Both the position numbers and the translations under genes were made by a program. 64,000 nt of DNA from Tubulanus polymorphus (Eukaryota > Animalia > Nemertea). The DNA is taken from NCBI RefSeq assembly GCF_964204645.1, contig NC_134036.1, positions 1,674,001 to 1,738,000 of the forward strand, given 5' to 3'. Of this stretch, positions 13,465 through 60,250 are shown in pieces. The first letter of the stretch is position 1; each line of letters begins with the position of its first letter. The notes below the pieces were generated by a model. That model saw nothing but the letters and a program-made list of their open reading frames with translations. It was not told the DNA's origin and searched no databases.

Positions 13465-16400
13465 ATGCCTTCAAATACAGAACAGGTTAAACGACTGAAG
13501 ACGTTCGGATTCGGTTTGAGCGCTTTGAGAAAAAAGTGGGAGGTACGTGCTCTTAGACAAAATAGACCGGTGCGTATTCTAATACGATAATCTGTAGATT
13601 ATAGCCGCTTATGGATTAGGAGGTACTAACCCTGGTTTTAGAATGCAGTGTGAGTGCGTGGATTATCTTAGTCTCCGGTATAGAGTTTGTATTGTATTAA
13701 CACGCTTTAAGTCGTCATTTGGATCGGTCGTCAAATTACCGAAATCATCTCTAGTTTCGATAGTACCTATTTATATTTCTAATTCAATTCACTTGAAGTC
13801 TAAGTTTTCGAAGTCATTTTAGGCTAAAATGAAATGATACCTTGTTTCTCCTAATCGGCCGAGGTCACTTTTATAAACTGCAATAACATTTGTAATCAGT
13901 TCACGAGAAACAAGGTGTCAGGTTTTTTTGCCTTATTTTTCAATTTCACTTAGTATTATGTCCACTTTGAATAGGTTTACGACGTGGTCCCAAATGCGAC
14001 TTAAAGCGAGTTTTCCTGTCTTCCCTCTAGACTATCGAAGTTGACAGATTTGGTTCCATGTTGTTGTGACTCAAAAACTTCGCCAATGAATTTATTTAAT
14101 TTCCCAGTTCGCCGTTTGCCCAATTTTCGGTTTAGACTTTCTTACCAATAGATTTGAGAAATTTTGACTTTTAACCAAATGTCACGTTTCAGTTTTTCGA
14201 ACTGATTTCTCGCTCGAAATTCTCAAAATCATTTTGGAGAGGAGTTTAGAGTCGAGTTGCACCTCATGCAACAACCTGTGGAGCCAATTCCAGTTAGCCA
14301 ACCTACAGTTTACGCACCGTTCTGATTTTCATATTTTCTTGCATTTTTTCCTATCTCATCTTTTTTACGACTAATATGTAATATAGCTATTGCATGACCA
14401 CCACTCCCACACCTTCGAGAAGAAAGCAATGTAATATTTCTCAAAGACATTACAGGTGAAATAGAGTAGTTTGACATTTCGGGCTTCCTATTTCTTGACA
14501 CTTGATATAATTCGGCGCACAAGATTAAAGTCTATAAATATGTTCTGATTTGACATTAATGTCTCCACTAGCCCTGATTTCAACAATAGTTGATGTTAAT
14601 AAGAATTTTTTTTTCTAGGGTAAAATGATACCTTGTTTCTCCTAATCGACCGGGTCATTTTGGCAAACTGCAATAAAATTTGTAATCAGTTCATTCTGTT
14701 ATTGTTAGCTTGATCATGAGTTTAAAAAAAAAGTAATAATGTACGTCCGGAGGCGGCCAGGTTGGTCCAGCAGAAATGAGAGAAACCAGGTACCCTTTTT
14801 TCTAGCCTAAGAATTTGTTTTCAAATTCTTTCTGCATTCACCTGTCAAATGAATAAATATATCATTTGCAAGCAACGAAAGTAAAAATCTGTTGACATTG
14901 CTAAAGACATCGAGGTCTCGATCGCGAATGAATAAAGACTGTTTGATTTAGATTTGTCTAGGGTACACGATAGCTTGACATTGCATTCGATCACAAATTC
15001 GATTGTTATTCTTTCCGATTAGACTTTCAATAATAAGTTACAATTATGAAACCAACAGGTATCAAAGAAATATTTATTTAGATCCAATATTTCAAGTATA
15101 TATTCAGCCCAGACGATCATATTTTCTATTTTTGTCCCAGCTCTGAAAACAAGCTCCATTCAGTGTAGTGTACATTGTTTGCAGACTATGTTCGGTTGCA
15201 TAACAGCTTGTGTTCCCACAATACCTGTCTCCGTGCTTCAATAATCGATTTAAAAAACGCTTTTGATTTCGTCCGTTATGTACTACTGCTTGAAAGCTTT
15301 TATTGGAAGATTAAGGGTAGGACAATTATTCGTGGTTTCTCCTAATCGGCCGGGTCATTTTTGTAAACTGCAATGAAATTTGTAATCATATCATTTTCTA
15401 TAACTGCTGGGTCTGTTATGGTTAGCTTGATCATGATTTCAGAATAGGGTAGACAGGCGGCCGGTCGGGTCAGCTTTAAGGCCCAGCAGAAATTTGAGAA
15501 ACAAGGTATCAATTTTTGTAGCCTAAAATGCGAACCTTTGTAGATAGATCTTTATTGAAAGGAGGGGTATAGACCGCAGAATTTGGTAAATTAACTATTT
15601 CAGTTAAGCTCAGCAGAAATGAGAAACAAGGTATGAATTTTTTAGCCTAATCACTTTCGAAATAGACTTTAGAATATTGTTTTTCGGATGGTCGTAAATC
15701 TTATTCCGGCGACACAGCACGAAGGTTGACGAATTTGATTTCGAGCCAATATATTTTCGTGCGTGCTAAACTTAGCGCTAATATCGGCGACAAAAATGTT
15801 CGGAAGCGCGATTAATTGCATTCGAATCCCGACGGTGCGTTCTCCGCGCGATTGAAATAACGTATTGTCACGCGAGACTGACAACGAGAATTGAATGATT
15901 TTAGATGGGATGTCGTGACGACACGGGAGGTAGGGGAGAAGTAGGGGAGGTATGGAGACATTTCTGAACTGGGCGCGGTTTCACGAAAAAGTTTAAGCCT
16001 AAAACGGTTTAGTTTGAATTGTTTGAACCAATGGCAATTACACCAAAAATTTGAGTTTAACTTATTTGTGAAACTGGGCCCTGGGGTCCATCCGTCATTT
16101 TGGACGCCCACTAGATCAAGCACATTTCTGTCGTGGTATGGACGGGCAGTTTCTGAGACGATATATTATGTTTTCACAGGCTATACATTCCTATATAGGG
16201 AACACATGGAAACTAGATGAATAAAGTGAATATCCACGATACAGTGAAACTAATTATATGAGCCATTTTGAAAATATAATTTATTGAACAGTTATAACAA
16301 TGCAGAGGGAAGATGGAAGCGACAAGGTTGCTAAGTGATGATTATTCAGTGGCTGCTTCTTGGTCGAGGAGTTTTTTTGGGTAGAGAAATTTAAGTTGGA

Positions 16401-18683: not shown

Positions 18684-21081
18684 ATCGACGGAAATTGCCG
18701 AACGCCACCAATAGGATAGTGTATCATAGAAAGACTGAAACAAATATATTAGGAAATTTTCTCGTTTTTTTCGTTTTTCGTTATAAAGATTCGCGAGTGA
18801 AATGTTGATTGTGAGGAACTCGTCGCGCTTGTGGGGGGTAGGAGGCCCTCTACCCCCCGAGCAAACCTGCCAAAACTCCTTTTGTCTCAGACGAACGTCA
18901 TTTGTGCCAATTTCGAGACGCTTCGTCAATCGATATAAATCAGTTATTTCGCCGTTTTTCGCCGTGATTGGAACTCTAGACTAAAACGTCATTCGTCGAC
19001 TGGAACTCGCTGAAAAAGAAGTGACATCGATTTCAACGATGATCGCGTGGAGATTCGAACCTGATGGTATCCAAGATGTAGAAACTTACAGCATATAAAC
19101 TTTAGCGATAGGAACTAAACTACGTTTTTAATAGATTCGTTCGTAAAAATAACCGATTGTCAATCTAAGCGAGGGCCCAGTTTAGCGAAAAGTATAAGCC
19201 TAATACGGTTAAAGTTTGAATTGTTGTCCTCATTGAAAGTATGAAGTCACCAATGGCACCAAAATTTGAGTTTGACTTTTTTTGTGAAACTGGTTCCAGG
19301 ACCAACAAAGTCAACCTCTAACGACTATTGCAAGTTTGCTGAGTCTGTGATGTCATGATTACGTGCTGATCCCCCTTTACCGTGGGTTGATGGCTTGCCC
19401 TAAAGCTCCCTTATTCTTTTCGCGCAGCAGTGACACCAGATCTCAGCTAAAATTGGTGTTTTTTCCGATAAAATGCCGCTATTTCTTTCTTCGCTGAAGC
19501 AAATTCCGCCACGCTTTGCGTCTAAACCTGATATGTCTTCTATAATAGCCGCCTAGTCTTCAGTGTGCTGAAATCTAATGTGTTCATTTTGAGGAAACAA
19601 ATCGAATTTCCAGCGAAAACTGAAAAAATTCTTATTTATTCTAATGGATCAAGTTCTACAATTCTCGATTTGATTTCAGTCTAGAATTGTGGAACTGGGT
19701 CCTGGGGATCCAGTTCCAAACGTTTTTGTCAATTTCCAAGGATCTAATCTTAAATTCATATCAGAAAATTGACTACAGATACATTTTAGAACTGGATCCC
19801 CATAAGTTTGTTGATTCACCATTTAAAATCACACATAGCATCATCTGGTTATTAGTCATTAATTAACCTAATTGACTTACCAATTATCTAACTAGCGATT
19901 TGCATTGGTATTAATTAGTAATCTAATTATCGTAATTATTTATTAATTGTATTTACTTGAAGTGCGTTAGTCGTGTGCGGCGAGTGCGTGTGCGAGTAAT
20001 ATTTACTGAAAAAAGCAAAAAAAAAATTGTTGTGTATTTAATTCAACATCCCGTCACTGCTAAATTAGCAAATGATATATCATATTCATCAAAGTTGTAA
20101 GTATTTTCTACAATAAAATATCGTATAGGTCCATACATATACATATTCTAAAGAAAACGTGTTTGAATATTTTGTGATGGTCTCTTCTTCGTTTTGATGA
20201 CGGATTTTGTCCGAAGGATTCTGGAAACGTTGGAAGTTTGGACGATCAAGAAGAATAGTGGTGATTAGGCTAAGAAATGATGCATTGTTTCTCCTAATCG
20301 GCCGCGCGTCATTTTGTGAACTGCAATAAAATTCGTTAACAGTTTATTTCTATAACTGCCGGGTCTGTTATTGTTAGTTTGATCATGATTTTAAAAAAGA
20401 GGTTAGACACAGATATAGCTTAGCGGCTAGCCGGGTCAACTTTAAAGCCCAGCTGAAATGAGAAACAAGGTATTGATTTTTTAGATTTAGCATGGAATGC
20501 CTGATGGAGCGCACAGGTCCCAGGCGGATGATTGATGCATCGATGGAGCGATCAAAATTGGAATTGTCGGATTTGGAAAAACTCAAATTTTCAAAAGCTC
20601 TTCCAGCACGACCCTTCCCATCATGCAGTATGAATACCTCAACAATAACGCGTGTCCTAACAAGCCCTCGCCAATATCGCAGTGTATTATGGGAAGTTTC
20701 GAAGTCCTTGACGGCGGGAAATACGATTTACTGAAGATGTAGGTTACATCAGTCAGTGAGGTATTGTAAGACGGTTCTCTCTGCTTTCTTGCTTCGATGG
20801 CCATGTAACGGTTGGGGAAATGAAGCCACTCATATATATCGTCCAGTACAGTGCATTTTAACCATGTTAGTGGTCGGTGCGGAGTTGGACTATATTTCTG
20901 ACAGCCAAAGGAAACTGGACTATACGTGTATAGAGCCGGACTATATTTCTGACAGCCAGGGGAAACTTAAAATCACCGGTAAGCGCTTCTACTCCACTTC
21001 ATCAAGTTCTTTAAATTGGACACCGATTAGTTGAAGGTCATGGTAACCTGTTTAGTCAGGTAATCATACATAAACTTCTTG

Positions 21082-25200: not shown

Positions 25201-28200
25201 GTGTTGTCGAGATTCAAAAACTGTTCGTTCCATAAAACATTTCTTTGATCACGCACCTCAATGATACAACTGTAGCCGTAGAATCCTGGAAATAGCAAGC
25301 ACATATCTATAGATGGTTGTGGGATTTATGATTTTTGAAAGGTTTGGGATTTTAGAGATGATAGTAAGAGGGTATTTGACGTTTCGACTTAATAAAGAAG
25401 TTTCCAGTTTCTAGGCGCCATTTTGTGGCGGTCCCTCGAGGTCCCCATTGTTGCGATAATTAGCGCTCATTTTTAAAACATTAGATTGAACTGGAAACTT
25501 CTTTATTCTATTGAAGAAGATTTTAAAGAAATGAGTCTAAACATCACTACTCAGTTTTTGAAAATGTCTCATAGATTTGAGTCTAAACGTCACTACTCTC
25601 TTAGTTTTTGAAAATGTCTCATAGAATTGAGTCTAAACGTCACCACTCTCTTAGTTTTTGAAAATGTCTCATAGATTTGAGTCTAAACGTCACTATTCTC
25701 TTAGTTTTTGAAAATGTCTCATAGATTTGAGTCTAAACGTCACTACTCTCTTAGTTTTTGAGAATAGCTCATAGAATTGAGTCTAAACGTCACTACTCTC
25801 TTAGTTTTTGAGAATAGCTCATAGAATTAGTCTAAACGCCACTATTCTTTTAGTTTTTGTTCACGTGGCTCCTAGAATTGAGGCGAAACCGTCAAATGCT
25901 GTCCTTTATATTGTTAGATTTTCATCAAACATCTTACCATATTTGCCATCGAGATCTTGACGTTTAGGTTTCCGAGTTTGGAGGTTAGCGCACCTACAAA
26001 TTCATTGCTTTTTAAAGACAATTTAAATTCTACGAATTTCAAAAACCGGGCAATATAGTCAACCTACCCGTACGCGTTGCCTTGGATACACCTGTCCAGT
26101 AACTGATGGGCGTGAAATGATACGGTGATAAATGCGAGTTCACCATCACCCTGAAAATAACAGCAGGAAGTTTGTCTTGTAGCATCGGAAACTTCGGAAG
26201 CTTAAAATTGCAAATACAAAAGATCATACGTAGAGATATGAAATTTTTGATAAAATACTATAATGTGAATTGCAGGACATTTTGAACGTGCTGTATGACC
26301 ATAAGAAATCAAATGCCAAGGTAATGACATTATTCCATTACAAGTACCTCCATTCAAAACTTGTTTGACATGATAGTTACGTAAATTACCTTCCAGTTAG
26401 AAACGGCTACACCATCTCCGAAATCAAATACTCTGATAGCCTCATCTTCGGACAGCGGTGTTTTATCCTCGCACCATCTCGACCAGTGGAAATCTCTCTC
26501 CAGCAACAACGACCTCTGACTCGGACTGTAAGGAAAATATATCAACCGCATCGGTCAAAAAACTATGAACTTCTGACTCTTGTGAATTGGTTGGCGAATT
26601 TTGTTTATCCAAAATCCGGCTCAAATCGGGAGGACTCGAGAACTGTAAAACAACGTCTGAAGCAATACAGTTTAGCCACATGTTAATAACAATATTCAGT
26701 GTCTTGAACAGGTTTTAAATATTCTCTTGTTAAACAACATCTTGGTATTCAGCCTGCCATCTCACAATTACTGTAAGCAGTTAGAAGGCATTCATTGTAG
26801 ACTGGAAGAAGACGTTGCCACTAAAAATACTGGAAATCGTAAAAATATGCATCCTCATAACTTGCACCAGTACAAAACGTTATCACTATAACAAATGGCA
26901 ATATACATATTTACCTGCCTTTAAATCGCATTTCTGCAAAATTGGAAAATAAAATGGCGCATCGCATACTATAATAAAGTTTAACACATATTTCGGATAC
27001 ACAATAACCCCGAGACATTTTAGAATGTACATGCAGTTTTATAGGGTTCAGTCTTACTCTGCAGGAGTTAGACCGTATCACATTAGTCCGAAGTACTGGT
27101 ATCTTTAGTTTACTCGTCACTATTCTCTCAAAGCTGCCGAATACAACAGTGCCCTTCGACCATAAATCCCTGTAGTCCCTGTAGAACTATGTCTCATTCT
27201 CTTATCGTTATGGAATTTTAATGAAACCTGAATAAAACTTTTGACCTCAAATCCCTATTGTTTCTCAAATCTTACGTTTTTAAACAATCCCATATATTAC
27301 GCACCTGTTCGGAGAGGCTTTGCCTTTCTTGTCGACGAACACAGGGTTCATACTGTATATTTTAAGCTTTCTTATTCTGTCGACAGGGGGCAGTTGGAGA
27401 TCGTACCAGCGGACGGTTACCGACATGGCGAAATAGTAGACGTCTTTACACGTGACCGGATGTTCGTTACCATCGGAATCGACGAACGACAACAACCAGG
27501 ATATCCCTAACAACCTGACGAAGGTAAGGCGGAAGTTTTAACTATTATTGGTAAATCCTGCAGAGGAAATACTTATTTAGCAGTTACGGTAGACTCCGGT
27601 AACGCCGGAGTAGCCGGCTACGCCTAATGATACGTGTTCTAGGAATAGTTCCAGTGATTGTCCCAGAATTCGAGAATTTAGTGGGCCCTTGATTTGAGGC
27701 AAGCGCTCACAGTCTGCTATCTCATTCAAGGAGGTCTTTATTTACATACTTATCATCAAAATCAAGTCAGGACAAAGTGGTAACTAAATTGTCGCAACAG
27801 ATAAGTCAGTAATCAAAGAGGCAAGGTAATACCTTCCATAACTAAACATGAACAAATCTGAACAAATTTTTTTTGGAACAAAAACAGCTGCCAGACACGG
27901 ACATTAGGGACATTTCGAAACGACTGTATTTCCAGATTCTTTTTGGCATTTACGGAGAGCAATCTCCCATCTTTATCAAAAGCGCTACCATTCTCTCTCT
28001 CTCTCCCTCTAGTGGAGTTCTCACCCTGACTCGGGGAAGACTCTATTACTTACTGTAACGCCTTGTTCAGATCAGCCGGTAATTTCGTGTAGGGACTTTT
28101 CTTTTTTAGATATTTACCGATGAAACCATTCCTATTCGCGACTCCCCTAAAAATTGATGATGATGGTATTTATATATCAGCAGTATCTAGATCACATCAT

Positions 28201-30617
28201 TGAGAAATCAGCGAGATTTTCTCTTGATCTGATACTGAAAACTCTCGTCTGTATCGCGTGTCTTGACAGTAAACCCCGCCTCACATTGGACTTGGTACTA
28301 ATTCGGACAAGAAGAAATAAGTTTCTGATTTCCGTAGCATCTCTCTCGTTTTCTTCGTAGATCCTTTTCACGGACCTCGCTCCGACGCTAATTTTGCCAG
28401 TCTCAGATTGGCGACACTGTAGTACTCTGAAGCCTATTAAACCTCCGCACTTAACTCGCTCAGACATGGCCAATTCAGACTTTTGACTTTCGAATAACTC
28501 GGGACTAAATTACGAAATCATTTTACAGTCTACCTCGGATGTAACGTAGAAAAAATACGGTATATTCGAGGCCTTTTTTAAAGGCCTAATAGAAGGAAAA
28601 ATTGGACCTGGGGAAAAATACGATACAAGTGAATCTACGGTAAATCCAACGACGTTACATCCGAGTTTGACTGTATTGACTTATTTCTTTCTCTTAATGT
28701 ATTTTCCTCGAACTTCACCAACACCTCGGTCCGATTTCTCCACCGGTCCCAATTTAGACAGATTTCTAAGGCAAGGTTTACTGTACCGGTACTTATTCAA
28801 GTTTGGTCGTATATTGATTAAAGCCCTATTGATGAATCAAGGTAAAACTGGTAAAACAAGTTAAGATTAAAAGGTTACCCTTTGATGCATTCAGTCTTCC
28901 AGTAACCGGGAGGCGGATCGAGCGGTTGAGCGATGCATTTCTTCTTGTCTTTCCGAATGTGTTCATCAAATATCGGCTTCCAAATTAAACTACAATCGAC
29001 AGCAAAAATAGTTGTGCAACTTCGATTTTGATATTTCTAATAATTCATTAAAATTGGAAACAATTCAGACATTCACTATTGTAATGGTAACAATCCGCAG
29101 CTTGGAATCCTGCACCACTTCAGACATTCACTATAGTGTAGTGGGGCGATGTGTGGATGATCAGTTTTTAAATGTGCGCTGGTCTAATGTCTGATGTTTG
29201 TAGTTCATTTTTCAATTAGAAATGTCTCAGGTGAAGCACTGAACACATATGAAGTGTGGACGATCAGTTTTTGAAAGTGCGCTGATAAAATGTCTAATGT
29301 CTGGTGTTTGTAGTTCATTTTTCAATTAGAAATGTCTCAGGTGAAGCACTGAACACATGTGAAGTGTGGACGATCAGTTTTTGAAAGTGTGCTGATAAAA
29401 TGTCTAATGTCTGGTGTTTGTAGTTCATTTTTCAATTAGAAATGTCTCAGGTGAAGCACTGAACACATGTGAAGTGTGGACGATCAGTTTTTGAAAGTGT
29501 GCTGATAAAATGTCTAATATCTGGTGTTTGTAGTTCATTTTTCAATTAGAAATGTCTCAGGTGAAGCACTGAACACATGTGAAGTGTGGACGATCAGTTT
29601 TTGAAAGTGTGCTGATAAAATGTCTAATATCTGGTGTTTGTAGTTCATTTTCAATTAGAAATGTCTCAGGTGAAGCACTGAACACATGTGAAGTGTGGAC
29701 GATCAGTTTTTGAAAATGTGCTGATAAAATGTCTAATGTCCGTGGACGGTAAAAAATCGGTGTACCAGACTACAGATTGATAGCTCTATGAAATTAAGTT
29801 TTATTTGCCCCTTGAAAACGTACTTATCATTTGTTAGATCGCGCCACCTACGACAAACTCGAGCCGCTAACAGTAAATCACTGGGTGTTAAAGCGCTGAA
29901 CACTTGCAACAGAATCTCGTCTGGTAAACTGTAAAATAAAATCCATCACGATCTCAACTTTTGACAAATTTCTTTTTAGACTCTGCCATGAGTTGACTTA
30001 AGTCTTGATTTGGTTTGGGTTTCTCAGACAAGCGACTGGAAGAAAACACAGACTCATGAATGTGAAGCTTTGACCCGAATGCCACAAGCCATTTTCCAAA
30101 TATATGAACATTTTTTTTGGAGAATGGCTCATAGCATTTGAATCGAAACGTCCAAATCGTCTATTCGTAGTTTTTACTCAGTAAAATTTTCGGGTTTCTT
30201 TGTTTCGGAGATCTGTTTGCAGAGGTTTAAATGAACTTACTTCGACAGACACGGCTTCCCTTTGAACACGGGACGAGATTTCGGTTGGAATTTCTTCGAT
30301 GGAGTTTCCCTACAGAATTACACATTTATTATCAAACTTATGCCTTTAACCCAAGGAATCATCCTTAAGATGGTTCGGTTCAGAGAAGTTCAGTCGTGTT
30401 TAAATTTGTGATTGTTATTCTTGATAACATAGATTACGTTTTTAATCGTATCATCCATCCTCTGGCAAAATACCTTTCTCTTTGAACTACTCGTTTTCAA
30501 GTACTGCGTACTGTGTTACCTGTTTGCGTTTTCGTGAACGGGTTTGTTATTTTTAGCCTCACGACGATTCCTCATGTACCCGGCTAGATGGGTCCGGTGT
30601 CGCCCCCCGGTGGCCAT
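22260..30617 (-). CDS. FBXO15: F-box only protein 15; 14 exons: 30617-30520, 30309-30241, 29928-29824, 28989-28879, 28146-28054, 27514-27305, 26525-26390, 26150-26068, 25993-25938, 25285-25190, 24681-24569, 24143-24082, 22965-22851, 22370-22260
   Basis: MATGGR start; F-box LPDEILLQVFSALTPSDLLLAARVCRRWRDLTND; FBXO15-type motifs YWK, SPYTKLP, LGISW, DLDGKYGFYGY, WKTDLFKG, MDVTVLD, SSPV and C-terminal IDDWFGTNY. Intron phases are consistent. Confidence 0.9.
25394..25504. mobile_element. 111-bp MITE related to the 55001-56322 element (ISL2EU-like, AT target-site duplication); another related end at about 46655-46725
   Basis: AT|AAAGAAGTTTCCAGTT...AACTGGAAACTTCTTT|AT; shares AGGCGCCATTTTG.GGCGGTCCC with the large element. 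Confidence 0.75.
25529..25897 (+). repeat. 50-bp tandem repeat, about 7 copies; unit resembles a degenerate minimal hammerhead ribozyme
   Basis: Unit TTGAAAATGTCTCATAGATTTGAGTCTAAACGTCACTACTCTCTTAGTTT; period 50 (25561, 25611, 25661...). Confidence 0.9.
29140..29750. repeat. 110-bp tandem repeat, about 5.5 copies, in FBXO15 intron 3
   Basis: AATGTCTCAGGTGAAGCACTGAACAC at 29221, 29331, 29441, 29551, about 29660. Confidence 0.95.
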
Positions 30618-30684: not shown

Positions 30685-30903
30685 GGCTAAACAAAAATGA
30701 TACCTTGTTTCTCCGCAGCGGCCGGGTCATTTTTGTAAAATATGATAAAATTTATAAACAGTTCATTTCTATAGCGGCCGGGTCTGTTGTGGTAAAATTG
30801 ATCACGATTTAAAAAAAAGTTATGTATAGGGTAGATAGGCGGCCGGCCGGGTCAACATTTAAGCTCAGCAGAGCGGAGAAACAAGGTATCTATTTTTTTA
30901 GCC
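30685..30903. mobile_element. MITE with GG termini and TWA target-site duplication (Zator- or Harbinger-like); copies at about 13822-13932, 14618-14807, 15317-15523, 20268-20485, 23013-23228, 23250-23376
   Basis: TAA|GGCTAAACAAAAATGATACCTTGTTTCTC...GAGAAACAAGGTATCTATTTTTTTAGCC|TAA; shared interior GGGTCATTTTTGTAAACTGCAATAAAATTTGTAATCAG. Confidence 0.82.
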
Positions 30904-32368: not shown

Positions 32369-34912
32369 TTATTCGAACCATTTTGATTTTTTTCGTTTAT
32401 TCGAAGTTGTTTTCGAGTTCGTGTCGAATTTCTGTCGATATTTATTCACTAACTGATCGAAACTATCAGCGCCCCCTGCTGGTGCTTTCCTCTTACCGTT
32501 TCTCTGTTTCGGCTCTCGTTGCTGCGCCGGAACTGAGTCCGATTTCTCGACCGTTTGTCGTTTCAATTCGCTACGACTCGGTCGCCCTTTCGGTTTTTCG
32601 GGTAGTTTTTGCGGACCGCGCGGTTTGTGACGTATTTTCGGACCCCAATGCGACGGCAGACCTTTTTTCATTTTACCCGCTGAAACGGCGGCGGCGCCAT
32701 CTGCCGCCGGTACGGGAACCACGACCTGATTACCCGCGACGCGACCTTTCCTCGGGTTCGCGGTTTTCCCCGACGATTCCGCTAATTTCGCCTTCGAGCG
32801 CTCGAGACGTTTCTCCTTGGCGAGAAGTTTCGCCTGATTCTCGAGCGAGAATTCGACAATCGGTCGTTTCTCCGCGCCGAACAACTCCGCGTTATTATTC
32901 ATCGCGCGCAACGCCTTCAACGCGTCGTCATGGCTACCGAGAGCGACGAACGCGTATCCTAGCGACTGTCCGACTCCGCTGGCGTTTAATTTCTTTAAAT
33001 CTCGCATGACGCGACATTCAGTAACCCGCGCCGATGGGACGATCTGTTTAAACGTACGGCGCAACTCGGCGTCTCCGACTCGTTTCGGCAGGTTGTGAAC
33101 GCACAGACGCGTCGACGACACGAATATATTCAGATTTTTCAGCTTGGCGCGTTTAACGGCGTCCAAACGGGCGCGTTTCGCCAGATCGGTTTTCGAGAGG
33201 TTTTCGGCGGCGCGCGTACCCGGTCGTATCATACCCTCGCGTACCAGGTGCAGATTACGTTTATCGGTCGAAGGTTTGTTTCTCTTCTCTTGTTTCTTGG
33301 CCGCGTCGTTCGCTGCGCATTTCTCCCGCGAGATGGCGACACTGACGATCAGACGGCGTCCGTCGAGCGTGATACCGTCGTCGTCCTCGCTCGCCGCAGC
33401 AGCGATACACCGCTCGGCCGCCGACTTCTCGAGGAATTTCACGAACGCCGTACCGCGTGATTTATCGGTATCCGGATTCACGACGATACGCGAGTATTCG
33501 ACCTCGCCGAATTTCTCGAACTCGGTGTCAAGGTCGTCTTCGACGCTGTCGTACGACAGATTCTTCACGAACACGGTTTTACCTTGTTCCACGTCGTTGC
33601 TACGATACGCTTCACGCGGCCGTTTATCATCATAATCATCATCGTCACTCATACTGTCATCATCATCTTCATCGGAATTCGATTCATCATCGCTTTCCTT
33701 TTCATCTTCACTAGATTGGTCATCATTCTCGCTATCAATCTCTGCATCTTCATCGCTAACCATCTCCTCCTCATCTTCACTGGAATTGTCATCATTTTCT
33801 CCATTTTCATCATCGTTAGCGATCTCTGAATCGCTCGCATCATCGTCATCATCATCATCGTCATCACCGCTAGCAACAGCTTGGTCGTTTTGTTGCGACT
33901 CCTCGTATCGACTCTTCGCGAGCGCCCAGTCGACGGCGACCGGTCGACCGGCTATCGACTGACCGTTCATCGCGTCGAGCGCCCGCCGGGCCTCGGCGGT
34001 CGATCCGTACTGGACGAACGCGAAGCCGAATTTTCGCCCGTTGTCGCGCGTCGGTATCCGAGCGTCGGTCAGACGACCAAACGCACGAAACGTTTTACGT
34101 AATAAATCCTCGTTACACGTAAACGCTAAATTACGTACGATCAATCGGGACTTTCGTTCGGATTCCGATTCGCTGATCGCTTTTTGTAAAACGACTTTTA
34201 AAGATTTTCCGCCGATTTTCATCATTTTTAATCGTTTAACGGCGACGATCATCGCGTCCTTCGTCGCGAAGTTCAAGGTCGCTCGATTCTGATTGGTCGA
34301 ACGTTCAAACGCGAGATTCTCGACGTTTTCGATTTTCGAGAATTTTTTCGCGTTGATTTTCGCGTCGCAAAAAACGTCGACCGCATACGTCTTATTCGAG
34401 ACCTTTTTATTCCGCTTTTCACCGACAGGCGGCGCCACTTTCTCTTCGACTTCCTCATTCTCACCGACGCTTTCATCTTCGATTTCCTCCTCATCTTTTG
34501 CCGCCGTCGGTTTTTTCTTTTTCTTCGTCTTTTTCTTCTTATCGGCGAGAACGACCACCAGGGGGCGCCCGTGAAGTTTCGGTTTAAGATTCAGAGCTTT
34601 CTGGGCATCGTCGGGCAGCGAGTAGGTAACGTAACCGAACCCTCGACAGACGGCGGGCGTCGCCGCGATGTCCGACGAATCGCCTCTTCGGTTATTGTTG
34701 CCGCTGACAACGAAGCATTGTTTCATCGGTCCGATCGAACTGAATACTTTCTCCAGATCTTCGTTCGTCGTTTTCGGATGTAAATTCCTTACGAATAACG
34801 TGTTTTTAGAGACGGTCGATCGAACAGCAGCGCCCCCTACTGCTACACCCTCGCCAGGGCTGCCTTCTACACCCTCGCTATCATTTGATGGGTTTTTTGC
34901 TGTTTTTGTCAT
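32369..34912 (-). CDS. RBM28: RNA-binding protein 28 (Nop4 homolog), 847 aa, single coding exon; 5'UTR intron about 34917-35333
   Basis: RRMs (TLFVRNL...RGFGYVTY; RLIVRNL...GFAFVQY; TVFVKNL...GTAFVKF; RLCVHNLP...GYAFV), central acidic tract, DKRNLHL.REG.I motif, RPIVEFSLEN, C-terminal KWFE. The true start is probably the ATG at 34912 after the acceptor TTTCAG; the track's start at 34936 is intronic. Confidence 0.95.
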   Translation of the reverse strand: MTKTAKNPSNDSEGVEGSPGEGVAVGGAAVRSTVSKNTLFVRNLHPKTTNEDLEKVFSSIGPMKQCFVVSGNNNRRGDSSDIAATPAVCRGFGYVTYSLPDDAQKALNLKPKLHGRPLVVVLADKKKKTKKKKKPTAAKDEEEIEDESVGENEEVEEKVAPPVGEKRNKKVSNKTYAVDVFCDAKINAKKFSKIENVENLAFERSTNQNRATLNFATKDAMIVAVKRLKMMKIGGKSLKVVLQKAISESESERKSRLIVRNLAFTCNEDLLRKTFRAFGRLTDARIPTRDNGRKFGFAFVQYGSTAEARRALDAMNGQSIAGRPVAVDWALAKSRYEESQQNDQAVASGDDDDDDDDDASDSEIANDDENGENDDNSSEDEEEMVSDEDAEIDSENDDQSSEDEKESDDESNSDEDDDDSMSDDDDYDDKRPREAYRSNDVEQGKTVFVKNLSYDSVEDDLDTEFEKFGEVEYSRIVVNPDTDKSRGTAFVKFLEKSAAERCIAAAASEDDDGITLDGRRLIVSVAISREKCAANDAAKKQEKRNKPSTDKRNLHLVREGMIRPGTRAAENLSKTDLAKRARLDAVKRAKLKNLNIFVSSTRLCVHNLPKRVGDAELRRTFKQIVPSARVTECRVMRDLKKLNASGVGQSLGYAFVALGSHDDALKALRAMNNNAELFGAEKRPIVEFSLENQAKLLAKEKRLERSKAKLAESSGKTANPRKGRVAGNQVVVPVPAADGAAAVSAGKMKKGLPSHWGPKIRHKPRGPQKLPEKPKGRPSRSELKRQTVEKSDSVPAQQREPKQRNGKRKAPAGGADSFDQLVNKYRQKFDTNSKTTSNKRKKSKWFE

Positions 34913-35409
34913 TTTTCTGAAATAAGATAATATCATTGATCGAATTAGAGATTTTTGACTCAGATTTGGTACTTATTTATAACAATCCTTCACAACCTAA
35001 TCTTTCTAGGCCCCTTCCAAAGACCCCAACCAGAACCACATTTATTGATTCTTTTCAATTCAATAACACTAACTAAACCATCGCACAACACATTGAAAGG
35101 CAACCTAAATTTACCCTAACCAGCATCCCTTACCTTCAACCCAAAACTAACAGCAAACCTGTACTGCTAACTGTTTATTTTATCATGACTGGCTGACTGG
35201 ACTGTGAGGATAATAATAAATTTTTGAATTGAATTTGCATCGAAAAATGGTTTATTTCTCGAATAATACTCAACTCGTCACGTGACTTCAACATCGAAAA
35301 TTATAATCCAACAGTTTAAAACGTGAAGTTTACCTCGAAATCGTTTATTAACCGCTCAGCAATTCAGATTAATCACAAATACCACTTTAATCCGATCAGA
35401 AAATATACC

Positions 35410-37658: not shown

Positions 37659-38109
37659 CAGTGGAACCTTGTTACAACGAACTCTTATACAGAGATTCAT
37701 TAAGAATATAAAATTGTGCCCCGAATAAGAGAATCTAATTATTTTCATACTGGATATAACAAATTTTCAGTTATAACGAACAGATTTTCTGGTCTCCTGA
37801 AGTTCGTTGTAATGAGATTCCACTGTATTTAGAACTGTTGGTTATGATGGACAGATTTTCTGGTCTCCTGAAGTTCGTTGTAACGAGGTTCCGCTGTATA
37901 GAGAACTATCGGTTATAACGAACAGATTTTCTGGTCTCCTGAAGTTCGTTGTAACGAGGTTCCGCTGTATATAGAACTATCGGTTATAACGAACAGATTT
38001 TCTGGTCTCCTGAAGTTCGTTGTAACGAGGTTCTGCTGTATATAGAACTATCGGTTATAATGAACAGATTTTCTGGTCTCCTGAAGTTCATTGTAACGAG
38101 GTTCCAGTG
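37659..38109. mobile_element. pogo/Tc1-type MITE (CAGTGGAACC TIR) whose right end is amplified as a 71-bp tandem array of 5 copies
   Basis: CAGTGGAACCTTGTTACAACGAAC at 37659 and GTTCGTTGTAATGAGATTCCACTG|TA ending at 37825; CAGATTTTCTGGTCTCCTGAAG at 37781, 37852, 37923, 37994, 38065. Confidence 0.82.
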
Positions 38110-49341: not shown

Positions 49342-51200
49342 TTCTGAGAGTGGAATCTTTCTGGATGCGAGTGGAATTGTGACTTGTTGCGCATGTGGAT
49401 TCCAGCTGTGAATAGGACTTTCCGCAGCAACAGCAGTGGATGCTCATCATCAATGATAATATCGGGAATGGCAAGATAAATCTCAAGAATCAGACGCGAA
49501 CATTTTAATGACTTGTGTTTGTTGATCAGGACTAAATCAGATGAACTAGATAAGATATCTAGATATGTGGGAAAGTTTTAGAACTCTGAATCTTCTCATT
49601 GAGAGGATAAACAAACGAACACAATGGGAGAACTTGACTTCAGTTATAGTGAACTAACTGGACTATCAATGCATTGGTACTCGTAAAAAAGAAAACCATT
49701 CAGTGGTGGACTTCTGGAGGTGTGGAATTGTGGAACCCGGTGGAATATCATCACTGCTAGGCAAAGACTTGTGTGAGTAGAACTTATTATTAGTTTCCAA
49801 AACAATTATGAGAAAGCAGTTTTATCTATTTAGACATATTGTTTACTGAATTTCATAAGAATTGTCAATCGGGTTATTTCAGCAGCCTGTATTACAGGAA
49901 TTATAATTCAGGCTTTAAGTAAGAGTATCAATTTCTGGCTCAAAAATTATTTGAATATTTGGCTGATTAGAAAGAAAATCGTATTTCTGAACCAAATTTC
50001 ATCAAAATTAGTGACGAAATTAAGGGTCAAATCGCTAAATCCTGAATATTTCATTTTAGGGATTTCAGATCCAAAAACTAACTTCATATTCGTGATCAGC
50101 ACCCCAAAAAACATATCTGTACTAAATTTGATTATAATTGGGTCAAAAAAAATTTTTGACTTTGTACCCCATTTTTGAGGTGCATATTTTGGCCATAAAA
50201 ATCCTAATTTGGCCATGAAGATGAATTCCGATTCAAAATCTGATTGCAGATCCGGATTCTACACGCCAGAATACATCTTCCTACCAAGTTGCGAAGGAAT
50301 CAGAGAAAAAAAATTTTTCGCCGAAAAAAAACTCCTTAGATTTTTGCCATTTTTGGCAAAAAAATCGAATCTCTTCGATTTGCTTGAAATTTTAGTCCTA
50401 CGTAATCTCAGGGGTGCTGATTCCAAATCTGCAATCAGATTTTGAATATCTCAAAAACTCTGGGGTCCAAGGCCTTTTCAAATTTTAGGGGTCCGCCCAA
50501 AAATTCGAATTTCTCATTTCTGGTGCCCTGGATCCGACGAATTTTTTCAGATTCGTGATCAGCACCCGAGAATACATGTTGGTACTAAATTTCATCGAAA
50601 TCGGAGACAAAACATATTTTTACCTTAACCCTCATTTTGGGCTGTACCTTAGATTGCCATTTCTCTGATACACCGGTAACTGATTGGTAGCCTCAAATGT
50701 ATTATATTAAGTTTCATGTTTAATTTTAGGACGTTTGTCATCGATACGGTGGAACTATTGACGTTTGTGTTTGTTGATCAGGACTACATCAGATGAACTG
50801 GATAAATATGTGTGGGCAGTGTTAGAACTCACCGAGAGGATAAACAAACAAACGAACAAATATTGGGAGAACGAACTACATAGAACTTATAAGGAGAACT
50901 TGACTTCAGTTACAGTGAACTTTATGTCCACGAGGACTAAATATGTGACATTGCTGCTGATGGGATAAATATCTGTTTGAACTGAAAAATCTAAAACTGC
51001 TCGCGGCATCTAGAATCTGACGGATAGAAAACAACAAGGAACATAGAAGTTTAGGTGATATGCCATCCTATCCTATCTATCATTCTCTCTGCCTCATTCT
51101 CCATCTGCTTGCCATCTACCGGGTTGAGATAGGAACTAGTTCCTGTCTCGCCCGGTAGATGGCATTGTTTTTTTTAAATAAAATGTGCTTAAGCAATGGA
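49342..51200 (+). ncRNA. Possible spliced lncRNA divergent from HDHD2 (candidate exons about 49342-49771 and 50730-51200)
   Basis: Acceptors TTTCAG|49342 and TTTTAG|50730, donor GTGAGT at 49772, AATAAA at about 51177. The two exons share a duplicated segment (about 49513-49650 and 50764-50920). No credible ORF. Confidence 0.3.
49939..50650. mobile_element. Arm of an unclassified DNA transposon
   Basis: Repeated subterminal motif TTCGTGATCAGCACCC...GTACTAAATTT at about 50089 and 50552, with an inverted GGGTGCTGATTCC at about 50412. The ORFs here lack protein character. Confidence 0.55.
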
Positions 51201-51237
51201 TAAATAGGACTGACTTCCCCTGCGGGTTGTCTAGTGC

Positions 51238-51302
51238 GTCCCTGTAGCGTAGTTGGTAGGGTGCTGGACTGCTAGCCGAATGGTTGGTGGTTCAAATCCC
51301 GT
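51238..51302 (+). mobile_element. tRNA-derived SINE head or pseudo-tRNA fragment
   Basis: A box TAGCGTAGTTGG and B box GGTTCAAATCC at tRNA spacing; no acceptor-stem partner. Confidence 0.55.
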
Positions 51303-51620
51303 ATTTTGTTAAATGGCTGAATAAAATGTTGAATTTTACTTTTGCAAACAAGCTGTAAGAAATTCCTACTTTGAATTTGGAATAAATGCTTTGATTTGTA
51401 CTTTGCGTTTGTCCTTTCCTTTGTCCCTTCCTATGAGAAGTTGTAAGCGGAAGAGTCCTTTCCTTGGAATAGAGTCCTTTCCGAGGTCGAGTGTGAAGTT
51501 GTGAGGGGAAGAGTCCTTTCCAGAGCAAAGTGCCCGAGACAGAGATTTTTAGTAAAGACGAGCATTTATATAGATGTACGTTTATTTATTTACGTTACTT
51601 TATGCGGCAAAACGAATTAA

Positions 51621-52660
51621 CGGAGTAAAGTCTGCGTCTCCAGAGGTTTGAAGATGGTGCTGTAGTCGGAGTAGAGTCTGCGTCTCGAGGTTTGAAGATG
51701 GTGCTGTAGTCGGAGTAGAGTCTGCGTCTCGGGGTTTGAAGATGTTGCTATAGTCGGAGTAGTCTGCGTCTCGAGGTTTGAAGATGGTGCTGTAGTCAGA
51801 GTAGAGTCTGCGTCTCGGGGTTTGAAGATGTTGCTGTAGTCGGAGTAGAGTCTGCGTCTCGAGGTTTGAAGATGGTGCCGTAGTCGGAGTAGAGTCTGCG
51901 TCTCGAGGTTTGAAGATGGTGCCGTAGTCGGAGTAGAGTCTGCGTCTCGGGGTTTGAAGATGGTGCTGTAGTCAGAGTAGAGTCTGCGTCTCGAGGTTTG
52001 AAGATGGTGCCGTAGTCGGAGTAGAGTCTGCGTCTCGGGGTTTGAAGATGTTGCTGTAGTCGGAGTAGAGTCTGCGTCTCGAGGTTTGAAGATGGTGCCG
52101 TAGTCGGAGTAGAGTCTGCGTCTCGAGGTTTGAAGATGGTGCCGTAGTCGGAGTAGAGTGTGCGTCTCGAGGTTTGAAGATGGTGCTGTAGTCGGAGTAG
52201 AGTGTGCGTCTCGAGGTTTGAAGATGGTGCTGTAGTCGGAGTAGAGTCTGCGTCTCGAGGTTTGAAGATGGTGCTGTAGTCGGAGTAGAGTCTGCGTCTC
52301 GGGGTTTGAAGATGGTGCTGTAGTCGGAGTAGAGTCTGCGTCTCGAGGTTTGAAGATGGTGCTGTAGTCGGAGTAGAGTCTGCGTCTCGAGGTTTGAAGA
52401 TGGTGCTGTAGTCGGAGTAGAGTCTGCGTCTCGAGGTTTGAAGATGGTGCTGTAGTCGGAGTAGAGTCTGCGTCTCGAGGTTTGAAGATGGTGCTGTAGT
52501 CGGAGTAGAGTCTGCGTCTCGAGTTTTGAAGATGGTGCTGTAGTCGGAGTAGAGTGTGCGTCTCGGGGTTTGAAGATGGTGCTGTAGTCGGAGTAGAGTC
52601 TGCGTCTCGAGTTTTGAAGATGGTGCTGTAGTCGGAGTAGAGTCTGCGTCTCGAGGTTTG
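51621..52660. repeat. 44-bp tandem repeat, about 23.5 highly similar copies
   Basis: Unit GTCTGCGTCTCGAGGTTTGAAGATGGTGCTGTAGTCGGAGTAGA; produces the 44-aa-periodic ORFs 51617-52735 and 51972-52763. Confidence 0.97.
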
Positions 52661-53795
52661 TGTAAAAGCGGCTGAAAAACAAATTGATATTGAAATAAAG
52701 TGAATGTCTAATGAAGACGATAATTGAAAATCCAAAGATGATTTTTACGTACCAGAGCAGCAATAACTGTTTGTTCGATCCGGTTCTCGGGAGTAGCAGT
52801 TGCTACAGCAGCAGCAGCAGCACACGTGTTTGATGTTGACGGAAGTGGAAATTGGTTACAACCTAAACAAAAAACAAACCAGTCGATTTACAACTAAACG
52901 ATTCGATTCAAAATCAAAAGCATTTTGAGTAGTTTACATACACTAAATTTCTAACCTCATCAAAATATATGTCGACTTGAAAACTAGTAACAATCCGAAA
53001 ATCAGCAACAAAAGCAACTAGTCATCTGCTGTAGCGATCCGTGGTAATCCGCCATCAGTAGCAATAGCAGCAGCACCAGTCTCCTCTCCATCTCGGGATC
53101 TCCTCCGCAAACGTCAGGACCAACAGTAGCTGTCTCATATTGCGTTCTCAATCGCCAGGTGTCTAAAATTCCTCGACGTTCCAGTCTTTCCTAACATCAT
53201 CGGACGCTAATTAGTAAGTTGTTCGCTTGAAACCATACGTTCTTCACGCCTTTTGGTGAGCTCATATAGGTTGACCTTCATCGCTGGACATCGGTTCTCG
53301 GACTGGCATCGGGAGGCTCGAACCGCGCTTCTAATACCTACGTCGACCAATCAGCGACGTTGCATCATCGAGGCGACCGGAGTGGATCAATCAGAAGGCT
53401 CGATCGCGCATTCCTGTGGCAGACCCGAGTCCGTGACGCTAATCCTCGAGAACCATTCAATTCGTGCCAAACATTTTCAATGGGGCTTACAGGTCATCGA
53501 GTTTAATTCGACTATTCATAGAGAAACATATTGTTAAAGATAGAATACCGAATGTTACAATTTTAGCTTAAAGTATCATACTGCAATTTCATCTAAACTA
53601 TCCAACAAACTTTAGTGAAGATGTCCCCTTTATTTACGTTTAGTTTTGAACTATAATTCCGGCTCAATTTTACTATTTTCGAGTTTTGCTTCAGGAATAT
53701 TGAAGTTTGTGCAGTCACGCGGCACTATTGTGTAGCAGAGCGTATGGCAGGTCTCCAGTGAGCGATTCTCTATTCGATTGTCGTTTTTAGCCGAT

Positions 53796-54380
53796 TTTAT
53801 ACACACGTTTACCAGACATCGCTACGTACACATCTACTCTGAGTCTACTCTGGCGAAGTTTAAAAAATCATTGAAGTTTTGTCAATTTACCTGGAGATTG
53901 ATGGCTGCATTACTTACATTACATCTGCATTACATCTACGGAATTCTCGTTGGGATTTTTTCGAAACAAAAATAAACAATTTCCCAAACCCTCACCAGTC
54001 AACTTAAAATAACAAACTAATATTGTAAAAAAATCGAAGGTCCCTGGGGGAAATACTCCGCAACCTGGACCGGCATTGTGGGATAAATAAATAATTCAGC
54101 CAGAAACGACTGAATTAAACATAATTTACCCCACGCCAGATATTCTGTAGGACTCACGCATTAGCAACCTCATTCCAGGGAGGACAGTACTCTCGACTCG
54201 CCCGCTTACCGGAGATCACTTGCCACATCCTGACCCGCCTCCTCCGAGACTCGAACCTGGGCCACAGCGGTGACACGCTAGTCGCCGACCGACTAAGCCA
54301 TCCGGTCCGCCCGATTGGTGCCGGTAAACATTCACAGATATTCGCCGACCATTCACATTCGGACAAAACACTGTGACGTC
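53796..54380. repeat. Direct repeat copy 1 (about 590 bp), paralogous to 59644-60250
   Basis: Manual alignment from TTTTAT.CACACGTT.ACCAGACATC through GTGACGTC; offset about 5.87 kb. Confidence 0.95.
54027..54312 (-). ncRNA. Structured Pol III-type RNA with tRNA/SINE-like head, copy 1
   Basis: A box TGGCTTAGTCGG (54300-54289), B box GGTTCGAGTC (54257-54248), long hairpin 54139-54070, T7 terminator 54033-54027. Confidence 0.7.
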
Positions 54381-55000
54381 ACAGTGTGTTGAAAGCCAAT
54401 GCACAGCATTGAATCAGAAAATCAGAATTATTTCAACGATTAAATAATTTTCGAACTTTCAAATGAGAGTTTTTTAACTGCACCAGCAGTTGAGCGTGTG
54501 GCGTCCTGGCAACATGCCAGCTTTTCACCTTAGTGTCTGATGTACCACAGTATGGTTGTACTAAGAACGACGGATATCTCTGTCGAGACCAGGACTGAGT
54601 GAACCCAGCTTTATATAGCGGTCCTGGAAATCTACATGTCACTATCTTCTGATAACGCGCTCCTATTTCCTCTCATCACGGGAGTTCAGACCAAATGTCT
54701 TACACCAGAACAAGTTTTATTTCATTTTTTATTTTTCTATTTCGATTAATTTAGGAATTTCAGGGCGATTCGTTAGATTGGTTATAGAAACGATCTAAAA
54801 TTCTAAGCAATGATTGTACAACTGTCCTCAGAATGATCCAGGATGATATGAAAACCTGAGACAAATTTGACTATAGTGGAATTTAAAACTGGATAATGAT
54901 AATGATATTTATTTGTGTTATATTTTCTTTTTACAATATTAAATCGTAATTAAATACATTATTATAATAATTCCAATAATAATTAATATTTTTTTCAAAT

Positions 55001-56593: not shown

Positions 56594-58508
56594 CTATTTT
56601 GTACGAGTGAGTACAGTGTTTATATTATAAACTCGCAGTGAGTCCGTTTTATTACTGTTATCCCAGTGACGGATAACTACAGTGTTACTGTCATATATTT
56701 TGTATATCTCATATGTCACACTGTCAGTAGAGTTCAATACTATACGCGGGTGATCTATAAACCCCTCATCATTATATCTCATACTAATCACGGCTCCTTT
56801 GTTACCAGTCCTAGAGTTTACCGATAATAATACATGTTTATCATTGATTATACACGGGGACCCCGCAAGTGGATCAAATGTTAGTCCGGAATCTTCCACA
56901 TTGATAAAACTGATCAATTCCGCATCAGCTGTTAGATAGAGTAATCTTCCCGATCTATTACAGTATACAAACATGCGTCCCCGCGTGTCGACATCTAAAC
57001 TGTTGATATATTCGTACTCTCCATCCGGGAGCTGATATTTTTTCACACGGTTTCTATCAATTAAACTATTTACAGGGTTTTCTAATAGACGTAAAACACG
57101 AACGTCTCTATCTAACTGGATGTAAATATTGTTACCGCGAATGACTAGTGTTCCACATCCAGACACAATATCAGTGACATCTTCCTCTAACACTTTGTCC
57201 TGATCTTTATATTTTCTCAGGCAGAGTTTCTTGTTTTTCTTCACGACTACAAACAGGTGACCGTTACTATCTGTATCGAGTCCTCGTACATAATCATCAA
57301 CACACTCTATATATCTCTTCATTACATTATTATCATCCATGTAATATATATCACTGGACCCCCAGAGGTCCGCACATATTATACGTGACTGTTGACCCGT
57401 CTGCTCACCAGGTAATGACGTCACTAGACTGGGTCTGAAGTCTGTCTGAACCTGTTTACTGATCGTTAATGAATCAATGACGTCACCAATAGAACTCTCC
57501 ACTTCATCCATTCTCCCTATGACGTCACCAATAGATATCTCCAATTTATCTATTCTCCCTTTGACATCATTGATTGTTCTTCCTGTGACGTCATCGATAG
57601 TCTTATTCAGTTTTACTTCCAGTTGTTGTTCAGTACATGCTTCAAGTTGTTGTTCAGTACAGCACCGGTTCAGCCTCTCTTCAAGTTGTTGTTCAGTACA
57701 GCACCGGTTCAGCCTCTCTTCAAGTTGTTGTTCAGTACAGCACCGGTTCAGCCTCTCTTCAACTGTGTCTATAGTGCGCTTAAATTGAGAGAATTGATTT
57801 TCTAAATTATCATGAAACAGTTTGACATTGTCAATTAGGGAATGATGACGTTGATCAATGTCTGGTTGAACTGTTCGCGCTTCACTGATCGGTACAGTGT
57901 TCACTCTAAACACGTATTCGTTTCCGTGACGACAAGCACCGATTACAAGACCCGAACCTATTGATTGCGGAGATTGTTGAAGTTTCGATTTGTAGATTTC
58001 ACACATTTCTTCATTTTCACATTTAACAATAAACACCTGATTCTGAGGTTGATGATTGAACGGGATCGGATGATTCGGTATCTCCACACCAGAGGGCGCA
58101 TCTCCCCATTCTAATTTCACCTGAAATAGAAAACGACATTTTTATTTGACTCTCACCTCGCAGTGGTCACCCGTTTAGTATCACACGCGGGTGATGATGA
58201 AACTGAAGATGAGAATTACAGATTCTTACCTCATCAAACGGCATCATCTGCACCGCTATTACGTGACCTGTATAGATGGTTTTTAGTTCGTGTTTAATAG
58301 CAGCCTCTAATTCTTCACACCACAGAGTTATATCAAGTTGTAATATATTTCCATCCGCAGTTATTCGATCAGATTCCAAATTAAACAGCGGCTGATAAAA
58401 GTAATTTTGTGTCGTTCTGTACTCATTATCCTGATCGGACCAAACGTTAACGCGACGCCCTTTGAAAGGTACGGAAATCTCGAAACGATCCGGATTACTT
58501 GTAGCCAT
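56594..58508 (-). CDS. Two-exon 601-aa protein (58508-58230, 58120-56594): uncharacterised N-terminal domain, coiled coil with 13-aa repeats, C-terminal NHL/SMP-30-like beta-propeller
   Basis: The two track ORFs join in phase 0 across a 109-nt intron (GAG|GTAAGA ... TTTCAG|GTG). Heptad-like region; propeller-type blades VRGLDTDSNGHLFVV and INSLDVDTRGRMFVY. Confidence 0.8.
57620..57762 (-). repeat. Coding 39-bp tandem repeat (EERLNRCCTEQQL x3 plus a partial copy)
   Basis: TTCAAGTTGTTGTTCAGTACAGCACCGGTTCAGCCTCTC at 57641, 57680, 57719; identical copies. Confidence 0.95.
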
Positions 58509-59643: not shown

Positions 59644-60250
59644 TTTATGCACACGTTCACCAGACATCACTGCGTATACATCTACTCTGAGTGGAAGCTG
59701 GCGAAGTTTAAAGAATCATGGAAGTTTGTCATCACTTGTAATGAAATTACCTGGAGATTGATAGCTGCATTACTAACAAAGATCTACGGAATTCTCGCTG
59801 GGATTTTTTCGATTTCTTCGAGGAATTAAACAAGAGTAAAAAAAAATTTCCCAAACCCTCACCACTCAACTTAAAATAACAAACTAATATTGTAAAAAAA
59901 TCGAAGCCCCTGGTGGAATTACCCGCTGCCGGGACCGAGATGACGAGATAAATAAATAATTCAGCCAGAAACGACTGAATTAAATAATACTTTACCCCGC
60001 CACCGGTGGGATATAGGACTCACGCATTAGCAACCTCATTCCAGGGAGGACAGTGCTGCGCGTAGCCACCGTCCGCTTACCGGAGCTCATTGCCACATCC
60101 TGACCCGCCTCCTCCGAGACTCGAACCTGGGCCACAGCGGTGACACGCTAGTCGCCTACCGACTAAGCCATCCGGTCCGCCCGATCGTAGCCGGTAAACA
60201 TTCACAGATATTCGCCGACTATTCACATTCGGACAAAAGGCCGTGACGTC
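59644..60250. repeat. Direct repeat copy 2 (about 605 bp)
   Basis: Aligns to 53796-54380. Confidence 0.95.
59894..60182 (-). ncRNA. Structured Pol III-type RNA with tRNA/SINE-like head, copy 2
   Basis: Same A and B boxes as copy 1, hairpin 60007-59934, T7 terminator 59900-59894. Confidence 0.7.

Follow-up and report, generated by a model that had tools for sequence, protein, structure and literature searches.

A long hairpin found in two sequence variants on the minus strand of the window (the whole stretch of 64,000 nucleotides analysed here) belongs to a genome-wide family of near-identical, gene-like units. We give an even chance to the reading that this hairpin is one domain of a structured, non-coding RNA of ~283 nt whose multi-copy gene is specific to the lineage. 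To our knowledge, lineage-specific Pol III RNAs are almost unknown beyond mammals and a few model organisms, and none has been described in ribbon worms. The family is of interest for its clean, gene-like promoter, for a predicted structure of some size in which compensatory evolution begins to show, and for its strikingly regional distribution. Should the RNA be expressed, it would be a candidate for a new abundant ribonucleoprotein in a spiralian, and the invariant tip of the hairpin would be an obvious handle for its protein partner.

The long hairpin in the two copies of the window

Both copies of the window fold into the long hairpin on the minus strand (Table 1). The hairpin of copy 1 consists of a basal stem of 16 bp (5 + 11 bp, separated by a 3-nt bulge), an internal loop and an apical helix of 10 bp that closes a loop of 6 nt. 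In copy 2, the basal stem measures 17 bp (4 + 13 bp, 2-nt bulge), and the apical helix and its loop are the same as in copy 1. On the minus strand, the folding energy is -31.5 kcal/mol (z -7.5) for copy 1 and -30.6 kcal/mol (z -9.0) for copy 2, and for both hairpins none of 200 shuffles folded equally well. The 24-nt sequence of the apical stem-loop has two exact matches in the window, compared to zero expected. Thus, three statements of the original prediction, a long minus-strand hairpin in both copies, a basal stem of ~16-17 bp kept despite the difference in sequence and an invariant apical hairpin with a 6-nt loop, are borne out by the folds, energies and z scores and by the exact apical sequence.

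G-U pairs had been used to assign the strand, and this assignment holds as well. Three of the 26 pairs in copy 1 and five of the 29 pairs in copy 2 are G-U on the minus strand, where no A-C mismatch occurs. All wobble pairs are G-U on this strand; they occupy six distinct positions, for which the two-sided chance is ~0.03. Folding of the plus strand yields much weaker energies of -19.7 (copy 1) and -11.2 kcal/mol (copy 2). This supports the minus strand as the sense strand. When the plus strand of copy 2 was folded as DNA, the basal stem was absent, which rules out a DNA cruciform or a single-stranded-DNA hairpin.

Table 1. Positions in the window of the two units, their parts and the repeat that follows copy 1.
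Feature	Position	Strand	Remark
Copy 1, predicted Pol III transcription unit	54027..54311	minus	~283 nt plus U tail
Perfect 18-bp palindrome holding the CRE	54371..54388	minus	~70 nt upstream of the predicted start
Canonical CRE TGACGTCA, inside the palindrome	54375-54382	minus	exact match
AT-rich TATA-like box, -32/-25	54336..54343	minus	AT-rich octamer in 63/64 copies
A box TGGCTTAGTCGG, +12	54289..54300	minus	same position in 64/64 copies
B box GGTTCGAGTCT, +55	54247..54257	minus	invariant, 64/64 copies
Local hairpin, its tip being the first 'variable slot'	54182..54204	minus	two sequence types, both fold as hairpins
Long hairpin of copy 1	54070..54139	minus	fold, pair probability at least 0.99
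Apical stem-loop, 24 nt	54093..54116	minus	63 exact copies in the genome and one copy with 1 mismatch
T7 run, predicted Pol III terminator	54027..54033	minus	T6-8 at ~+279 in 63/64 copies
Composite repeat after copy 1	49647..54026	minus	~1.3 kb conserved DNA, minisatellite, ~1.4-kb module
Copy 2, predicted transcription unit of the rare type	59894..60181	minus	both slots differ; type common to only two other copies
Long hairpin of copy 2	59934..60007	minus	folding energy

Family size and distribution in the genome

The genome comprises 268 Mb in 77 contigs, and the window is located on contig C12. The apical hairpin was found genome-wide in 64 copies at up to two mismatches, 63 of them exact. 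C12 has 24 of the 64, C11 has 22, C9 has 16, and C8 and C22 have one each. Whether the query was the whole unit, the head alone or the tail alone, BLAST returned 65 candidates. A covariance model of the 3' domain gave 65 matches genome-wide as well, the sole new one at C12:10.62 Mb, and found no more distant relatives in the genome. Truncated or scattered solo copies were found genome-wide neither by the three BLAST searches nor by the covariance model. Since BLAST and covariance model arrive at 65 matches, this family of near-identical gene-like units is closed and young, and it is no high-copy SINE. Alignments of individual copies and promoter counts given below refer to 64 fetched copies. 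Viral contigs do not contain the exact apical hairpin.

The copies are not distributed evenly. Of the 65, 62 lie within the first ~6 Mb of three contigs, and these intervals make up 5.5% of the genome. Over these parts of three chromosomes, the copies are dispersed at one per 40-600 kb. Subfamilies are contig-specific and have long upstream flanks in common. At C11:1025940-1153300, four family copies in one orientation are spaced 41-43 kb apart with extra 1.4-kb modules (see below) between them; the region resembles a tandem segmental duplication of ~42-kb units.

Anatomy and predicted promoter of the unit

As +1, we use the first G of GGCGGACC, a start position placed by its distance from the A box. 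The A box has a single variable position, which changes together with its pairing partner, and the spacing of the internal A and B boxes falls within the 30-40 bp expected of type-2 Pol III genes. The long hairpin begins ~110 nt past the B box and is located within a closed multi-helix domain. Thirty-three of the 64 copies have an exact CRE, which lies between -42 and -71 and in most of them between -53 and -71; the C9 subfamily and some C11 copies do not have it. In known type-2 Pol III genes, the CRE/ATF site lies at about -50. Type-2 Pol III genes like those for 7SL, EBER, vault, 4.5SH and 4.5SI combine CRE/ATF, a TATA-like box at -31/-24 and A and B boxes, and CRE sites are absent from SINE copies (PMC7279448). 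In its predicted promoter layout, with the CRE in about half of the copies, the nemertean unit corresponds to true type-2 Pol III genes (7SL, EBER, vault and 4.5SH, among others). Among the sequencing runs at the locus, three are DNA-contig-like and cover everything, and one possible RNA run has zero cover.

Searches for a known identity of the unit were negative. ARAGORN did not find a foldable tRNA in the unit head. Rfam, whose families include SRP, 7SK, RNase P/MRP, vault and Y RNAs as well as ribozymes, returned nothing relevant for the whole window at gathering score and, at E of up to 10 across 53700-54500, no tRNA and only two chance snoRNA matches with E above 5. An SRP RNA was excluded, as four canonical SRP RNA genes are located elsewhere in the genome. 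A link to chromosome ends was discarded, too: the chromosome-end word GCAGACGA matches once in the window, compared to 1.04 matches expected.

The unit heads a composite repeat

The unit forms the 5' edge of a non-coding composite repeat of ~5 kb, in which it is also the part with the highest conservation. Mean pairwise identity amounts to 0.95-0.98 in the unit, falls to 0.90 over the 50 nt that follow and ranges from 0.8 to 0.93 in the 1.3 kb beyond. Family-wide homology starts ~70 nt upstream of +1; farther upstream on C12, the flanks are unique to each copy. The ~55 nt past the T run are also well conserved, which is not accounted for by a transcript that stops at this run. The downstream composite is common to most copies; copy 2 has only ~620 bp in common with the family. 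Downstream of both window copies, a CAG|GTAAAT resembling a splice donor was noted and dropped, as it is not part of the family consensus.

The minisatellite of the composite has a 44-bp period and occupies 51621-52660 with 23.6 copies at 95% identity; it is present downstream of most family copies. It yields spurious ORFs of 263 and 372 aa. For the ~1.4-kb module (49647-51100, minus strand), the genome has ~250 candidate copies; elsewhere, on C9 and C11, it occurs in arrays with a period of 3-3.5 kb. It contains a fold-back with arms at 50231-50270 and 50408-50447, which gives good folds on either strand (z -6.0 and -7.3). Open frames of ~190 aa recur downstream of the module; a Pfam search with these and with the ORFs of the window retrieved only an unrelated RRM protein.

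Few variable sites and three states of the basal stem

Across the 64 fetched copies, variable sites are few: 38 distinct sequences were counted over the unit alone and 39 over the unit plus the first downstream bases. The basal stem occurs in three states. Columns 186/248 of the alignment form a C-G pair in 15 C12 copies including copy 1 and a U-A pair in 46 copies, so that 61 of the 64 copies have essentially one stem sequence apart from this one compensated pair. The third state, the wholly different stem of copy 2, is limited to three C12 copies. For the other slot, there are two types, the rarer one in eight copies. Slot and stem types are combined as a mosaic, which points to exchange between copies.

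The original prediction had proposed variable slots. Copies 1 and 2 do differ in these slots, but the variability was overstated, as there are only three stem states and the type of copy 2 is confined to three copies. This calls for caution: two diverged copies that happened to share one window mimicked 'hypervariable slots', whereas the whole family displays three states only. Two outlying copies look like decaying pseudogenes. In the most divergent one, L063 (C12 9.26 Mb), an apical pair is broken, the A box is altered and no T run is found at its usual place. The other one, L039 (C9), carries a 25-nt insertion in the basal stem.

Selection on RNA structure

The consensus fold comprises 90 pairs with 99.7% of cells paired, and the long hairpin has a pair probability of at least 0.95 in every variant. 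Among the 90 pairs of the consensus, 72 are invariant and both sides change in only 3; this covariation comes wholly from young paralogues within one genome and has little power in the classical sense. More can be learnt from individual branches. One branch, comprising 12 copies, changed exactly two positions of the unit, and both are partners (columns 20/37, U-A to G-U). A second branch changed three positions, two of them being partners (columns 186/248, U-A to C-G). The chance for such double substitutions to hit partner columns is ~0.001 and ~0.003, respectively. A template-switch copying error would give a Watson-Crick pair and not G-U, so it does not account for columns 20/37.

Single substitutions follow the same trend. 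Seven substitutions in paired columns are common to at least two copies, and all of them keep the pairing; the five pair-breaking substitutions are each private to one copy (Fisher p 0.02 for shared vs breaking). Altogether, 14 substitutions were counted in 180 paired columns compared to 24 in 101 unpaired ones, an approximately 3-fold difference in rate (Fisher p 0.0004). The stem of the copy-2 type differs from the common stem at ~10 positions and has its bulge moved, and stability is kept. When nine random substitutions were placed in the zones concerned, only 1.7% of 5000 mutants kept the stem stability. The substitution pattern argues for selection on minus-strand pairing in several helices, beyond the long hairpin. 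The proposed selection on RNA structure is therefore upheld by the partner double substitutions, the pairing kept in 7/7 shared changes and the lower number of changes in paired columns.

Not all helices suggested before are part of this fold. The CCCUGG/CCAGGG complementarity was found in the family consensus fold with a probability of up to 1.0 in the common types, and the single variable pair of this helix remains paired. By contrast, a second co-varying helix had been considered plausible and is not supported. In copy 2, its GGUGG/CCACC pairing has a probability of 0.0 in every type-2 copy, because the slot forms a local hairpin of its own (closing helix 0.70-0.99 in type-2 copies); CCACC is also present in nine copies without GGUGG. 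In copy 1, the corresponding GAGUACU/AGUAUUU pairing has a probability of 0.045 and depends on a T that is private to copy 1 and disrupts a consensus pair. The GGACCG/CGGUCC pairing is weak, with a probability of 0-0.3, and overlaps and competes with the basal stem.

Comparison with known Pol III genes

The closest parallels to the predicted nemertean genes appear to be the rodent 4.5SH and 4.5SI genes and the primate snaR genes, all of them lineage-specific type-2 Pol III genes that arose from SINE, tRNA or 7SL sequences and were multiplied as DNA. Similarities include A and B boxes, a TATA-like box near -30, a T-run terminator and, in about half of the nemertean copies, an upstream CRE-type site (PMC7279448, PMC10137851), and in both cases the 5' and 3' ends are complementary (PMC3440375). 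Furthermore, a narrow taxonomic range and many near-identical copies inside longer DNA repeats are common to all of them. The 4.5SH genes are carried within a longer DNA repeat unit. For snaR genes, arrays have been described (PMC3045588). In contrast to these genes, the nemertean unit is ~283 nt instead of ~100 nt long and has an elaborate 3' domain, and its copies are dispersed every 40-600 kb on three chromosomes and do not form a single tight array. Its CRE is located at -42 to -71 and missing in about half of the copies.

With the 'mixed' type-2 promoters of 7SL, EBER and vault RNA genes, the unit shares the combination of TATA-like, A and B boxes, to which a CRE is added in about half of the copies, and with 7SL a similar size and a terminal helix. 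It differs in that neither its sequence nor its structure matches any Rfam family, and the true SRP RNA genes are located at other sites.

A proposed gene for a structured RNA and the competing explanations

From the family, its anatomy, the folds and the substitution pattern described above, we infer transcription, the polymerase, the RNA ends and the binding of a protein as follows. Pol III would initiate ~11 nt upstream of the tRNA-derived A box, aided by the B box, the AT-rich box at -32/-25 and, in about half of the copies, an upstream CRE, and would terminate at the T6-8 run. The RNA is predicted to fold into a short terminal helix formed by its 5' and 3' ends, a tRNA-derived head of hairpins, a local hairpin whose tip is free and a 3' domain shaped like a rod, which would bear the long hairpin. 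An invariant tip over a drifting base suggests a partner that reads the tip by sequence. Hence, the apical stem-loop may be recognized by its sequence, probably by a protein, and the basal stem may need pairing only, so that its sequence could drift via compensated changes. The genes may have multiplied as DNA, as the 5' module of the ~5-kb non-coding repeat, with local homogenization.

Alternatively, the unit might be the Pol III promoter and RNA part of a non-autonomous mobile or self-amplifying composite repeat, either SINE-like or similar to the TRIMp3 elements Helenus and Ajax, with its structure kept for the spread of the element and not for the host. We consider this possible, if rather doubtful. 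The unit is confined to parts of three contigs, tied to one repeat and always found at the 5' edge of the same ~5-kb non-coding sequence with the minisatellite; the large number of ~250 candidate copies of the associated ~1.4-kb module is in agreement with such an element, and contig-specific subfamilies with common upstream flanks are a sign of local amplification. Helenus with tRNA-like LTR sequences is known from two other nemerteans, and like Helenus and Ajax, the family places a small-RNA-derived Pol III promoter inside a non-SINE repeat (PMC10886601). However, the nemertean repeat is far longer than a TRIM, and no LTR pair was found: no second LTR copy is within reach of any family copy, and a search for close, co-oriented copy pairs found none besides the two diverged copies of the window. 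A supported PBS is missing, too, as the PBS-like word TGGTGAGGGTTTGGG, 27 nt past the T run, does not have a matching tRNA 3' end in the genome (one match with a mismatch vs three control matches). Moreover, the strong T run would halt Pol III ahead of the remainder of the element, and neither reverse-transcriptase nor transposase remnants were found in the nearby open frames. The unit resembles tRNA-derived SINEs in that a unique body follows a tRNA-related head, which contains A and B boxes, D-arm-like words and T-loop-like words. Unlike such SINEs, it exists in only 65 copies in one fixed downstream context, without truncated or scattered solo copies genome-wide, and a T run replaces the A-rich or LINE-like tail. 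Its conserved upstream CRE and TATA-like boxes are features of genes that SINE copies do not have (PMC7279448).

The unit might also lack a function of its own and represent either a relic tRNA-derived insert whose copies are kept similar by gene conversion or the most constrained 5' part of a long, non-coding, CRE-driven Pol II RNA. Young copies that are homogenized within contigs, conservation extending beyond the T run and a G+C content above that of the flanks, which could favour biased conversion, are consistent with this view, but gene conversion creates neither compensated partner changes nor a G-U bias on one strand, and L063 looks like a decaying pseudogene beside constrained copies, as does L039 with its 25-nt stem insertion. 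We judge a functionless unit to be unlikely. The regional distribution raises the idea that the units are cis-acting marks of chromosome domains, i.e. TFIIIC/Pol III boundary elements or the source of a domain-acting RNA: about 62 Pol III-type units, each heading a macrosatellite-like repeat, are found in the distal third of three chromosomes. This idea has little probability. Still less probable, in our view, is dicing of the basal stem into differing small RNAs in the manner of the tRNA-microRNA units (TMERs) of murine gammaherpesvirus 68, to which the unit had originally been likened. A box, B box and T run of a Pol III unit are present, as is a stable downstream hairpin, which with 26-29 bp is very stable on the sense strand. 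However, the two defining features of TMERs fail: the head is not a foldable tRNA, i.e. there is no cloverleaf with an acceptor stem for tRNase Z, and the hairpin does not adjoin the tRNA-like part, but follows ~110 nt past the B box inside the closed domain. In addition, the setting is cellular, an invariant tip above a variable base is the reverse of what is seen in microRNA genes, and one stem common to 61 of the 64 fetched copies, bar one compensated pair, does not support dicing into differing products.

Further features of the window

Between the two copies, an intact single-exon ORF of 508 aa without Pfam match is located at 56594-58120 (minus strand). It contains a 13-aa coiled-coil repeat encoded by a 39-bp tandem repeat, and its C-terminal half is beta-rich. 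It is one of a large family, for which 147 matches were counted; clusters are found near 2.0 Mb on C12, at 0.2-0.76 Mb on C8 and near 22.4 Mb on C6. A copy with 93% identity lies 2.3 kb upstream of a sister unit at C12:2.058 Mb, which implies that copy 1 and the 508-aa ORF gene were duplicated together. A second single-exon ORF of 855 aa (32369-34936, minus strand) lies in a G+C-rich island and encodes four RRM domains (Pfam E 2e-60).

A short repeat family was found at 13831-13905, 14621-14695, 15321-15395, 20274-20482 and 30694-30898. Its end segments are mutual reverse complements (AAAATGATACCTTGTTTCTC ... GAGAAACAAGGTAT), and it looks like a miniature inverted-repeat transposon of ~210 bp. 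Further minisatellites are located at 29072-29731 (110 bp), 25500-25878 (50 bp), 9355-9696 (56 bp) and 37755-38109 (71 bp).
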